A stretch of DNA of 64,000 nt from the NCBI GenBank assembly GCA_001179505.1, contig CDMY01000340.1, positions 1 through 64,000 of the forward strand, in the 5' to 3' direction. This DNA comes from Vitrella brassicaformis CCMP3155 (Eukaryota > Protista > Chromerida). The translations under genes and the position numbers were made by a program. Every line of letters starts with the position of its first letter. The stretch's first letter is position 1. The notes beneath the pieces are model-generated. The model made no database searches, was not told the DNA's origin, and saw nothing but the letters and a program-made list of their open reading frames with translations. Shown here one piece after another: positions 15,992-20,254 of the stretch.

Positions 15992-16963
15992 ATGAGCATC
16001 CAAGATATCATGTCAAGCCGATTGGTGGTCCCAGGGGCAGGGGCGGGTGTTGTGGTGACTGAGAGGTGGGTGGACTTCATGGACGTGGTGCAGCGGCAGA
16101 TAGATCTCCTGAATTGGCGAGGGAGAGGAGCACCAACAGCATCGTCAGCATCAGAGCACCACCCATTCCGCGAATTCTGTCTGTCTGCCTGTCCGTCTGT
16201 CTGTCTGTCGGTCTGTGTGTCTGTCTGTCTGTCTGTCTGTGTTTGTTTGCGGGTGTCAGGTGTACCAAAACATCTTCCACTCGTTGATCGAGCTGGAGCA
16301 GGTGTTTGCCTTCACGCTGCACGACCAAGTGGCCGCGGCCGCCCCCATGAGCGAGCGCCAGGCAGCACGCCTCATCCAGCAGCTGATGCAGGCATATTGT
16401 GACATGCTGGAACCAGGCTACTATCAGGCGTAAAAGAGGTGGAGGGAACACAGCGACAGTTTGTATGGGTGTGTCCGTCTGTGCAGTGATGCCGACTTGC
16501 GCAACTTTGTGTATGACGTGAGGGGCCGCGTGAAGCTTATGGAGCCCGGAAAGCGGCGTACCGCATCGAGATATGAGCGCATAACGATGGGTGTGCCCTC
16601 AGGCAGGGCAAGTGGAAGGAGTGGACCGCTGAGCTGCTAGTGAAGCGAGACACGCCGCCTGAGGTCGCACACAACCCAGAAGATGCAGACGCGCATTATA
16701 ACGTCCGTGTGTGTGTATGGCATGGTGTGCCTTCATTCAGGTGTTGGCCACACAGCGCGGCCAATTTGACGCAGAGAAGGCGACCGTATGGAGCGTGGCG
16801 TGAGCAGCACCTACACGCGCCCATGCCGCCTGTGCGGGGACGTGATGAGTGCTGGGTGTTCTTCCAGATATTTGGCCCTTTAGATCGTGACGTTCCTTCG
16901 TGCATCTGTCTGTCTGTCCAGGGTAGTGGGGAGGAAGTCCTGCAGGTGTGGGTTGATGAGTGA
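15992..16963 (+). CDS. Divergent protein-kinase-fold protein (probable pseudokinase); both termini uncertain
   Basis: Spliced exons give VVVTERWVDFMDVV (hinge-like), an alphaE-like helix, YYQADADLRNF (D-x4-N), VKLMEPG (in place of DFG), RDTPPE (in place of APE) and AEKATVWSV (in place of xDVWS). Confidence 0.5.
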
Positions 16964-17407
16964 ACGGAGGTGTGTGTCGCCGCCCATTGCGTGAGTAGCC
17001 AGACAGACAGACGGGACTGGAGGTGGATGCATGTGTGCATGTAGAGACGCAGGCAGTAGGGTGGGAGGATTGTGTACAGGAAGGGAATGGATCATGGGCG
17101 AAAACCGACTGCGTTGGTGTCGCGACCGACTGACAACCAACCAGTTACTGACTCGCATTCAACAGTCGACACTGTCGTCACGTCAATCACACCAAAACAC
17201 TCGCCGCAAACGAAGCCTCCACGCGTCATACGTTCAGACACACAAACACACCGCATTCAAGCACAGCACATCATGGATGGTATATCTTCACACCTCACAC
17301 AGCCACGAGGCAAACAAGAGGGAGCTTCACTTCAGCTCCTAGCAAATGCACCTAACCGCCTCTCTCTCTCTCGTCGACTAAAAGTCCTCAACCAGCGACC
17401 CCGCTCT

Positions 17408-17476
17408 TGTTGAGGAAATGATGTGTCGGCCCGCAGATGGATAACCTCGGCTATAGCCTGATTAGTTTCTTCAACA
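17408..17476 (+). repeat. 5' LTR (69 bp)
   Basis: TGTTGAGGAAATGATG...GATTAGTTTCTTCAACA, a direct repeat of 17675-17742 differing by one substitution and one indel. Confidence 0.92.
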
Positions 17477-17674
17477 GGTCATGTGCCCACTGACCTCAGT
17501 TCGAACCCCGATTAGCGCCCATACAGGGTGATACCTAGGGCCAAACCGGGCGGAAAACAATCTCGTTGAGCAGCTGCGGAGGGGTCGCGAGTTCGATTCC
17601 TGGAGGCAACACTGGGAACCTTGGAAAGGCAGAGGCGGAAAGGGGGGACCCTAGCTCTGCGGTCCGAAGGGGGG

Positions 17675-17742
17675 TGTTGAGGAAATGATGTGTCGGCCCG
17701 CAGATGGATAACCTCGGCTATAGCCTGATTGGTTTCTCAACA
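17675..17742 (+). repeat. 3' LTR (68 bp)
   Basis: TGTTGAGGAAATGATG...GATTGGTTTCTCAACA. It supplies the last sense codon and the TGA stop of the opposite-strand DUF4291 gene. Confidence 0.92.
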
Positions 17743-18459
17743 GCTCTCCTCGCTCTCCTGCTCGGCATCTTCGGCATTCTTGCCACAGGCGTGGGAAAAA
17801 AGCAGGCGGAACCGAACGGCATCGTCTGCAACCGGGTAGACGTCTTCTGTCGGCGTACACAGCCGCTCAACGTCATTTCTGCACCGCTCGTCGAGTGTGT
17901 GCACGAGGTCGGTGACGTCCTCGACACTGCCAAGCGCGTCGGTGCACATCTCGCGAAGGAGGTCGCCTCGCACGCCTAGCTGGATGGCCCGCCGCGGCAG
18001 CGTGTCGTTGGTGAAGGGCACGTGGTCGGGGTCCCATTGCATCACCACCGACGTCTCACCAATCGCAGCCTTCCACGCCTCACGAGTGCCATAGATCTCC
18101 TGGTAAGACGAGTGCACCGCCTCGCCCAGTAGACGGTCGAAGAAACAGCGGCGCAGACGCAGCGCCAACACACGCTCCTGATTTTTCTTGCTCGCCCATC
18201 CGCATCGGCACATCATCCAGGTGAAGTTGGTCTTGATCCACGACATGCGGTTGAAGCTGAACTTGTCGCCGCCGAACCGCTGGTGCTCGACGGCGTAGTC
18301 GGCGATGAACGGGTTGTATGCCTGGTAGACTGTCACGGTCTCGTCATCGAACTGGGCAAGAATGTGCTTCCCCTCTGCCGGCCATTTCGAACGCTGCTCT
18401 GCATAGGGGCTAAGCTGCAGCCGTGTCATTGCCTGCGCCTCGGTAAGCAGCTCGGTCAT
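17737..18459 (-). CDS. DUF4291 family protein, intronless
   Basis: ILAQFDDETVTVYQAYNPFIA, FSFNRMSWIKTNFTWMMCRCGWASKKNQERVLALRL, WDPDH and RRAIQLG match the DUF4291 pattern as I recall it. Single 240-aa ORF. Confidence 0.85.
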   Translation of the reverse strand: MTELLTEAQAMTRLQLSPYAEQRSKWPAEGKHILAQFDDETVTVYQAYNPFIADYAVEHQRFGGDKFSFNRMSWIKTNFTWMMCRCGWASKKNQERVLALRLRRCFFDRLLGEAVHSSYQEIYGTREAWKAAIGETSVVMQWDPDHVPFTNDTLPRRAIQLGVRGDLLREMCTDALGSVEDVTDLVHTLDERCRNDVERLCTPTEDVYPVADDAVRFRLLFSHACGKNAEDAEQESEESC

Positions 18460-18480
18460 CGTGACTCCGCAACGAGGGGT

Positions 18481-18562
18481 CTAAACCCTAAACCCTAAAC
18501 CGGCCGAAACCCTTGTTAACCTTAAACCCTAAAGTAGACAGGTTTAGGGTTTAGGGTTTAGG
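18481..18562. repeat. Inverted interstitial telomere-like arrays (CCCTAAA)n / (TTTAGGG)n in a bidirectional promoter
   Basis: 18481-18501 (CTAAACCCTAAACCCTAAACC) is the exact reverse complement of 18541-18561. An extra TAAACCCTAAA lies at 18523-18533. Confidence 0.9.
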
Positions 18563-20254
18563 ATGGGAAAAATGACCACCAACGACAGAAGCATGGACGA
18601 CAAGCGGACGATGGAACCACCTGCCAGCGAGAGCAACAGCCACGTGGTGTCGGTGGAGGACGGCAGCTGTTTCGACTACAGCGAAGCGTCAAGCGACCAC
18701 ACAACCGAGCCGGAGGCGCACAAGGCGTCGCCTGTCGGTGGGGCTGGTGAAGACATGAAGACATGTTCGCCGATGCGTCTCCCGAGAGATCCGTACTGGG
18801 ACAACGCCAAGATCTTCCTCGTCATTAATGTCTGCGTTGGGCATTTCCTTCAGGTCAGAACGACGAAGAGCAAACACACAGATTGGCCGCTCGCGCTACA
18901 TCGATCTGTGTCCGTGGTGTGTGTGTTCTGCAGGTCTACATACCGCAGGGGGAGTTTCCCAACGTCGTGGCGCGCATCGTGTACGTCTACGCGGCGGGCT
19001 ATATCATGCCTTCCTTCTGCATGATTGTACGGAAGGAAGACAGAGATAAGAAAGGCGAACGGGTACATGTTTCACAACACGGTGGTGTGTGGTGTATGCG
19101 GCTGCATATCTCAGTCAGGCTACTTCAGCAATCGCACGCACAAAGACGACTACACCACGTTCAAGCAGTCCAACAGCCTACTGTAAGGATGGAGCAAACA
19201 CGAAAGACAGTCGGCCACATTGGTACATGCATCGTTCGTGGTGTGTCAGTCGGGGGCTCTTCTTCCCGTACGTCATCTTCCAAGTGATTTACTCGCTTGT
19301 CTATCACTTCTTCTACGAGAAGCCCGACCGAGACTTGCCCGCGTTCGGCCTCTCAGTGCAGAGCAACTATGTGTGGCAGCCGTTCATCCACCTGTGGTTC
19401 CTCATGTCGCTGCTCGCATGGCGGCTGGTCGGCCCCCATTACATGAGGGTCGTCAAGTACCCTCTCATCACCTCTATCGTCATCGGACTGCTGGCAGGCT
19501 ACTCCAAGTAGGCGAACCTAGCCGGAAAAGCCGGAAGAGCAGCTGCAGCTTCCATTGTCTGTGTGTTGGTCTCAGTGCGACCCGGTTTCTGTCGCTGCAG
19601 CGGTCACTTGCCTACTTTCCCTTTTTCGTATTTGGGTGGCTGATGAAGGACACCCAGCCCCTCTTCACCCAAGCCAGACGGAAGTGCTATACCGAAAGTG
19701 GCATTTTGCCCTCTAAGAATGGCTTCATGGTATCGGCTTCTGCGCGCTGATGCTCGTCCCATAGTGTTTTACGGCCTCTACGCGCCTGGCTACTGGGACT
19801 GCCCAATATGGTAAGTGGGTGGGTGGGGGAGGCCGTGTGCAGATGTGGTGGTCCACTTATGCGCACATGTGCCACCTCATGCAGGTTTGGGGATCCATAT
19901 TGGAGTGAGACTGGTGAGTGCAACTTCCCTCAGTGGTATGCGTTCGTGGTGCGGCTGTTCTGGTACGCCTTCGACTTGCCCCTGTCCATTGCAGTCCTGC
20001 TCGTCCTGCCGCCGTTCCGCATCCCACACGTGAGCGACAAGTGGGGCCCGAGGACCATGCTGCCCTACATCGCCCACCCCCTCTTCATCATCGCCTTCCA
20101 GCAAGCCGGCTACTACCGAATCGATGGCCTCTCTGTGTCGGCCATGGTGGCCATATCGTGCTTCTTGGGTCTGGCAGTGGCCGTCTTGCTGATGACGGAC
20201 TACCCGTTCGCATTTTGGCTGCAGTATGTGGTGGACCCGCCGTTTCTGTCGTGA
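18563..20254 (+). CDS. Acyltransferase family 3 (O-acetyltransferase-like) multi-pass membrane protein
   Basis: RDPYWDNAKIFL...VGH, IMPSFCMI|SGYFS, FPYVIFQ, HLWFLMSL, RSLAYFPFFVFGW and many TM segments. About 6 exons. Confidence 0.85.

Follow-up and report, generated by a model that had tools for sequence, protein, structure and literature searches.

How can an element of a few hundred base pairs that carries no genes of its own be reverse transcribed and inserted into new sites, and from what source would it borrow its primer and its enzymes? The question is raised by a locus in the nuclear genome of the chromerid Vitrella brassicaformis CCMP3155, in a 64,000-nucleotide stretch of DNA (positions 1 to 64,000 of contig CDMY01000340.1; hereafter, the window), where two short direct repeats enclose a non-coding segment. 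We conclude that this is, very probably, a complete copy of a non-autonomous Ty1/copia-type terminal-repeat retrotransposon in miniature (TRIM), for which the most likely helper is a copia family resident in the same genome. Copies are referred to below by assembly contig number, C340 being the copy in the window. That copy, with its long terminal repeats (LTRs), is built as follows:

17403-17407, forward strand: left target-site duplication GCTCT, with the identical 5 nt at 17743-17747
17408-17476, forward strand: 5′ LTR, 69 bp, a direct repeat of the 3′ LTR
17477-17490, forward strand: primer binding site GGTCATGTGCCCAC, adjoining the 5′ LTR and complementary at 12 of 14 positions to positions 27-40 of the spliced host initiator methionine tRNA (tRNAiMet)
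17477-17674, forward strand: non-coding internal region, 198 bp, aligned with five sister copies
17666-17674, forward strand: polypurine tract GAAGGGGGG, adjoining the 3′ LTR and conserved in all six copies
17675-17742, forward strand: 3′ LTR, 68 bp, a direct repeat of the 5′ LTR
17743-17747, forward strand: right target-site duplication GCTCT, an exact copy of the left one

Counted from LTR to LTR (17408-17742), the element is 335 bp long, as given in an initial annotation that had been made from the sequence alone. The rest of the anatomy proposed there was also found in place: the two 68-69 bp repeats with TGTTGA...TCAACA ends, differing by one substitution and one indel, the perfect 5-bp GCTCT duplication, and the polypurine tract and primer site that touch the 3′ and 5′ LTRs, respectively. 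The substitution is an A at 17465, where the other LTR has G, and the indel is an extra T near the 3′ end of the 5′ LTR; a repeat comparison kept 63 nt of the two LTRs in register at 98%, with the indel falling within the last bases. Both LTRs start with TGTTGAG and finish with CTCAACA, which together form a perfect 7-bp inverted repeat, and a search for a 31-nt LTR core gave two matches in the window and none in 100 shuffles. Within the 198-bp interior, no open reading frame (ORF) reaches 70 aa. At 17364-17376, 30 bp upstream of the insertion, there is a short run of (CT)n.

The assembly (72,700,666 bases in 1064 contigs) was searched with the 345-bp stretch as query, and the family that the initial annotation had expected, with other full copies and lone LTRs carrying 5-bp duplications of their own, was indeed found. 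Five further full-length copies (on C269, C261, C307, C477, and C515) are 82-90% identical to the window copy, which brings the total to six on six contigs, with lengths of 303-335 bp; there are also two truncated copies (C797 and C1019) and, genome-wide, roughly 25-30 lone LTRs. Exact 5-bp duplications flank five of the six full copies and are all different (GCTCT, GGTTC, AGCCG, GAGGC, and AGGGG), while the sixth copy, on C515, ends in a CT microsatellite where the duplication is blurred. Exact and mutually different duplications were likewise found at 12 independent lone LTRs (GACAC, TAGTG, GTCGT, GAATC, GACGG, ATTTT, GGAAG, ACATC, ACCGC, CCCTT, TTCGG, and GCGAT; chance 1/1024 each). One additional lone LTR has a duplication matching at 4 of 5 positions, and several other lone units are truncated. 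Two pairs of lone LTRs with identical flanks (C365/C585 and C448/C133), which are assembly haplotigs or recent segmental duplications, were each counted once. A 34-nt LTR core, allowing up to three mismatches, gave 33 matches in the genome versus 0 for a reversed control pattern, and the contigs with two such cores, spaced 254-267 bp apart, hold TRIM copies only; this genome-wide LTR-core search recovered no gene-bearing or larger element with the same 68-bp LTR. The LTR had 0 matches in a metagenome scan. The TRIM family in the V. brassicaformis genome is real. On C430, a lone LTR (L012:1480-1500) is followed directly, without a duplication, by about 13 nt that resemble a second LTR start, and the two together could be what is left of a tandem array or of a nested insertion.

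Could the 68-bp unit itself be the mobile entity? It has perfect 7-bp inverted ends, and lone units with 5-bp duplications outnumber the 335-bp form by about 4:1, with a median pairwise difference of 3%, so one might describe it as a tiny DNA transposon, a miniature inverted-repeat transposable element (MITE) bounded by those inverted ends and making 5-bp duplications, in which case the 335-bp form would be two units that by chance enclose a 198-bp segment and move as a composite. Several observations make this description very improbable, however. In all six composites the units are direct rather than inverted and enclose the same internal segment, and that segment begins exactly at the tRNAiMet-complementary site and ends exactly at the purine tract; the same signals, plus the LTR start, are also found in a copia element (described below). 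Furthermore, TG...CA ends with 5-bp duplications are the signature of a copia integrase, and lone LTRs are a normal product of recombination.

The family's interior bears on a second alternative, namely a TRIM of the Cassandra/Helenus/Ajax type, driven by RNA polymerase III (Pol III), with an LTR or interior of small-RNA-gene origin. Two interior strings that resemble a T arm or box B, GGTTCGAACCCC and GAGTTCGATTCC, are conserved in all copies, and fungal Helenus elements have the same kind of primer site (PMC10886601). However, these strings lie in the interior and not in the LTR, and they are accompanied neither by a matching stem nor by a box A at tRNA spacing. Rfam searches with thresholds of E ≤ 10 over 16500-18700 and E ≤ 1 over three other copies found no tRNA, 5S, or other small RNA, and ARAGORN finds no tRNA in the window. 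Because no small-RNA family was detected in the window copy or in the three others, we do not regard the element as a Pol III-driven TRIM, and would be most surprised if it were one. RNAalifold, run on the six copies for a conserved fold of the interior RNA, was uninformative, returning a positive (i.e., unfavorable) covariation term and one compensatory pair.

The primer site links this element to a specific tRNA of its host. Using a T-arm-anchored pattern, we located a tRNAiMet gene at C378:53626-53706 on the minus strand, the only one found in the assembly. It scores 50.5 bits against the Rfam tRNA family (RF00005) and has the features of an initiator (GGG/CCC anticodon stem, and A54 and A60 in the T loop). 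It is interrupted at 37/38 by a 9-nt intron, TGCAGGGAC, whose removal gives a 72-nt tRNA. Because the gene carries this intron, it was missed both by a plain tRNA-Met anticodon-arm pattern (GGGCYCATAACCC), which had 0 matches in the assembly, and among the 63 best RF00005 matches, which include no nuclear tRNA-Met. The gene has C1:G72 rather than the usual eukaryotic A1:U72, and the bacterial setting of ARAGORN misses it.

The 14-mer GGTTATGAGCCCAC, which stands directly after the LTR in the C307 copy of the TRIM, is perfectly complementary (14/14) to positions 27-40 of the spliced tRNAiMet, GUGGGCUCAUAACC. The initial annotation had compared the window's primer site with an animal-type site, GGTTATGGGCCCAG, to which the anticodon arm of metazoan tRNAiMet is complementary (oligonucleotide printed in PMC1797187); the match of 11/14 reported there is correct by counting, and the host's own tRNA fits better. 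The comparison with the host tRNAiMet that it had also suggested yields an anticodon arm that, once spliced, is complementary to the site. A 12-nt core of the primer site has nine matches in the genome, all of which are primer sites either of this TRIM or of one copia family, and the 11-mer upstream of the intron has 18 further matches, none of which is a tRNA or a primer site. Owing to the intron, the 12-nt core does not occur inside any tRNA gene of this genome, so the primer site matches the processed tRNA only.

The complementarity is confined to positions 27-40 and ends on both sides, away from the tRNA 3′ end, and the primer would therefore end at position 40, as a 39-nt 5′ fragment. This arrangement is that of copia-style half-tRNAiMet priming, with the fragment just described as the presumed primer. 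We also considered whether the complementarity might extend over the entire 5′ half of the tRNA and rejected this, as the pairing, judged by eye, ends at 14 nt plus one G-T. The two-mismatch variant of the site seen in the window is common to C340, C261, and C515, which have different duplications, and a further variant is present on C477; that several copies have the same mismatched variant implies that it was inherited through transposition.

Which element might supply the enzymes? Eight of the nine primer-core matches follow the LTR of a single copia family (two each on C832, C861, and C1037, and one each on C89 and C416; the copies on C861, C416, and C89 were read in part only). Its LTR is about 210-230 bp long (approximately 210 on C832 and 228 on C902). 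On C832, the LTR is followed by the primer site, a 750-aa ORF with a Pol_BBD match (the copia protease barrel), an overlapping ORF in another frame that contains an integrase core (rve) and SH3_retrovirus, a scaffold gap, a purine tract, and an LTR; on C902, the 228-bp LTR of the same family is preceded, at a distance of 1.3 kb, by an RVT_2 match of 161 bits. When the 25 nt that precede the 3′ LTR of the TRIM plus the first 34 nt of that LTR were aligned with this family, the local score was 42, as compared to 16.2 ± 2.2 in a shuffle control in which 0 of 1000 reached 42 (z about 11). Neither the remainder of the LTR nor the leader that follows the primer site is similar between the two. Both LTRs begin with TGTTG, whereas the copia LTR appears to end in ...CAACT and that of the TRIM ends in ...CAACA. 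A second copia family, on C275, has no more in common with the TRIM than a generic purine run and TGTTGA. On C275, that purine tract comes after the 3′ end of the copia ORF and is followed by an LTR starting TGTTGA, with no matching 5′ LTR upstream, and this copy appears to be 5′-truncated.

The same 14-nt primer site, together with the significantly similar purine tract and LTR start, makes the long-LTR copia family the likely helper. The initial annotation had pictured a Copia partner with both the same LTR ends and the same primer site: the primer site is indeed the same, but the LTR is not, being about three times longer and alike in its first ~34 nt only. The short LTR of the TRIM has the look of a much reduced relative of the long copia LTR, although intermediates were not seen.

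The two families are physically linked on C832 (minus strand, C832:4050-11200). Here the second copia LTR runs unbroken into the primer site and a TRIM-like leader, and beyond a 1.1-kb repeat and a scaffold gap lie the 3′ part of a TRIM-like interior, a purine tract, and a short LTR of 66 bp. This locus is probably a recombinant; misassembly across the gap would be another possibility. In this tandem or recombinant arrangement the copia 3′ LTR doubles as the 5′ LTR of the TRIM-like element, and the two long LTRs of the locus are only 87% alike. We considered and discarded the idea that the locus is an intermediate form between the two families, as its extra length is mostly accounted for by an unrelated 1.1-kb repeat that has entered the TRIM-like copy. 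That repeat (type copy C268:11721-12804) has at least 40 copies in the genome at 96-98% identity, and within the C832 locus it also occurs at L062:520-1070 and L062:1374-1479.

Two other loci of the copia family show unusual arrangements. On C861 (12389-12800 and 14040-14451), two primer sites, 1651 bp apart, have LTR ends that are identical and a leader in common, and after about 33 nt this leader diverges from that of the other family copies; the arrangement could be a tandem array formed by a non-autonomous deletion derivative. On C1037 (4461-4982), the copia LTR end and primer site are duplicated at a spacing of 110 bp.

A different helper for the same kind of TRIM is the alternative that the copia data address most directly: some other copia lineage, missing from, collapsed in, or lost from the short-read assembly, might have mobilized a family that is perhaps now a fossil. 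RVT_2 matches number at least 63 in the genome and belong to several families for which the element ends were not recovered, and the copia loci are full of 300-N scaffold gaps. No LTR pairs could be recovered, owing to scaffold gaps or truncation, for the copia elements on C515, C806, C418, C615, C275, C350, C331, and C284, so the use of other primers by other copia families is read solely from the genome-wide pattern count. A missing lineage would also suit the lack of a gene-bearing element with a 68-bp LTR, the two-core contigs being TRIMs alone, and the fact that the likeness to our candidate ends after 34 nt of the LTR and the last LTR base differs. On the other hand, the 12-nt primer core is found genome-wide only in the TRIM and in one copia family, the purine-tract/LTR-start block is specifically alike in these two whereas the resemblance to the other copia family is generic, and a TRIM-like element is joined to the candidate family's LTR on C832. 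We therefore think another lineage unlikely to have been the helper, while taking it seriously.

With the resident long-LTR copia family as helper, the life cycle of the TRIM may be pictured as follows. Its RNA, transcribed from the LTR, would carry no genes and only signals acting in cis, among them the 68-69-bp LTRs with TGTTG...CAACA ends as signals for integrase. Gag, protease, integrase, and reverse transcriptase/RNase H would be supplied, and the RNA packaged, in trans, most likely by the copia family that has the same 14-nt primer site, by whichever of its copies, if any, makes these proteins. Minus-strand synthesis would be primed by the 39-nt 5′ fragment of spliced tRNAiMet, ending at position 40, with its anticodon arm on the primer site. 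Integration would produce the 5-bp duplication, and later recombination between the two short LTRs would leave lone LTRs behind. The LTR of Drosophila copia itself ends in ...CAACA, and its primer is a 39-nt tRNA fragment.

Several points weigh against this picture. The helper LTR is three times longer than that of the TRIM and ends in ...CAACT, the leaders after the primer site are unrelated, and no assembled helper copy is demonstrably intact, given the scaffold gaps and a frame change. An LTR of 68 bp leaves little space for a promoter, R, and U5. The two-mismatch primer-site variant in at least three copies would not be expected if the site were re-copied from the primer in each cycle. Activity and mobilization in trans are, moreover, things that we infer from sequence. 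Finally, lone LTRs outnumber full copies by about 4:1, the opposite of what is seen for the small LTR retrotransposons (SMARTs) of grasses, which have 3.4-50 full copies per lone LTR (PMC3281118).

The last of these points and the mismatched variant might instead be signs of unusual biology, although we find this rather doubtful. The excess of lone LTRs, for an LTR of only 68 bp, could reflect unusually efficient recombination over short homology in this alga or direct integration of LTR-only cDNA, the latter perhaps favored by a 198-nt interior, and the mismatched variant, which has transposed at least three times, could suggest relaxed pairing with the primer or a site that is not re-copied from the half-tRNA. 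If this were true, the element would be a minimal natural model of copia-type reverse transcription in an apicomplexan relative.

The two LTRs of each full copy differ as follows:

C340 (window): one substitution plus one indel, read directly from the sequence (a MAFFT tally splits the indel, giving 3 + 1)
C269: 2
C307: 3, plus a deletion
C477: 3, plus a truncation
C261: 5
C515: 9

The copy in the window is one of the youngest full copies. The near-identity of its LTRs, which to the initial annotation suggested a relatively recent insertion, stands, but two differences in 68 nt put no date on "relatively recent": the divergence does not convert to an age because there are only 68 sites and no rate calibration. 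Since even the closest sister copy is only about 90% identical overall, the window copy does not stem from a very recent burst.

The insertion also altered a host gene:

17737-18459, reverse strand: host DUF4291 ORF, 240 aa, complete domain (Pfam PF14124, E 6.6e-59)

The TGA stop codon of this ORF (17737-17739) lies inside the 3′ LTR and is taken from the terminal TGTTGA as read on the opposite strand. When the element and one copy of the duplication were removed in silico, the ORF became 243 aa long and ended in ...EESGVAG, whereas with the element in place it ends in ...EESC. The insertion therefore lies four codons before the original stop of the DUF4291 gene, and the LTR provides a new one. 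Four codons are replaced, and the insertion was probably nearly neutral.

Some contigs encountered along the way appear to be of organellar or bacterial type. The small contigs C991, C1054, C166, and C847 carry tRNA-Ile(GAT)/tRNA-Ala(TGC) pairs that are typical of the rRNA-operon spacers of plastids or bacteria, and C991 also carries a bacterial-type tRNA-Met. More than 20 tRNA genes are found on C467, which is probably the plastid genome.

How does this family compare with known systems? Like plant TRIMs and SMARTs, which are well documented together with their helpers, it is non-coding and a few hundred bp long, with two short LTRs, a primer site, a purine tract, 5-bp duplications, and lone LTRs; insertion in or near genes, and recognition of the helper by common LTR, primer-site, and purine-tract motifs, are also alike. 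It differs in that its host is a chromerid alveolate, in that its lone LTRs exceed its full copies (about 4:1), and in that the LTR of its likely helper is three times longer; in related plant pairs the LTRs are comparable in size. Plant TRIMs prime from the 3′ end of a tRNA, whereas the Vitrella primer site matches the anticodon arm. The Vitrella TRIM is no size record: the plant SMART FRetro129, which also has lone LTRs, is 292 bp long with 85-bp LTRs (PMC3281118), and CcaRetroS9, at 233 bp with 52-bp LTRs, is the smallest TRIM (PMC4717578). A pairing of a plant element with a copia helper has been made for OsajRetroS10 and OsajLTRA10 (PMC3281118, PMC4717578).

Half-tRNAiMet priming is known from Drosophila copia (Kikuchi 1986) and yeast Ty5 (Ke 1999), both as cited in PMC10886601. 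In those elements, as here, the primer site directly follows the LTR and is complementary to the tRNAiMet anticodon stem-loop; unlike the TRIM, they are autonomous and about 5 kb long, and the Vitrella site fits the arm of its host tRNA only after the intron has been removed. Primer sites that span tRNA introns have been described for fungal TRIMs (Kojima 2024, PMC10886601). The fungal Helenus TRIMs resemble the Vitrella family in their 5-bp duplications, and their copia helpers were inferred from common primer sites (PMC10886601), but their LTRs hold a tRNA-derived Pol III promoter, whereas no small-RNA-like module was detected in the Vitrella TRIM.

For Vitrella itself, the genome paper (Woo et al. 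2015, PMC4501334) reports 93 kb of putative TRIM/LARD (LARD, large retrotransposon derivative) and 213 kb of copia. The former is a class from a bulk pipeline in the same genome, without a family description, and the structural LTR finders used there considered LTRs of 100-1000 bp spaced 1-15 kb apart (PMC4501334), limits that exclude this TRIM from structural detection. A search for papers combining TRIMs with alveolates found none in the literature library used. The suggestion that the element is possibly undescribed thus holds at the level of the family only, given that the bulk TRIM/LARD class of Woo et al. and fungal TRIMs primed by tRNAiMet have been published. Miniature LTR elements, smaller ones than this, and anticodon-arm priming across a tRNA intron are already in the literature, and what we describe is a new family of a known type.

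The Vitrella TRIM therefore leaves the accepted view of how such elements work unchanged. What it adds is a description, at the level of a family, of a mobile element in Vitrella, a chromerid and free-living relative of the apicomplexan parasites, for which prior annotation was in bulk only. It documents a near-neutral hit on a gene, in which the end of an LTR provides the new stop codon, and indicates that 68 bp of homology suffices to produce lone LTRs. It also connects a TRIM with one particular copia family and one particular host tRNA, and the fit of its primer site to the spliced form of that tRNA only is internal evidence for priming by the processed tRNA.

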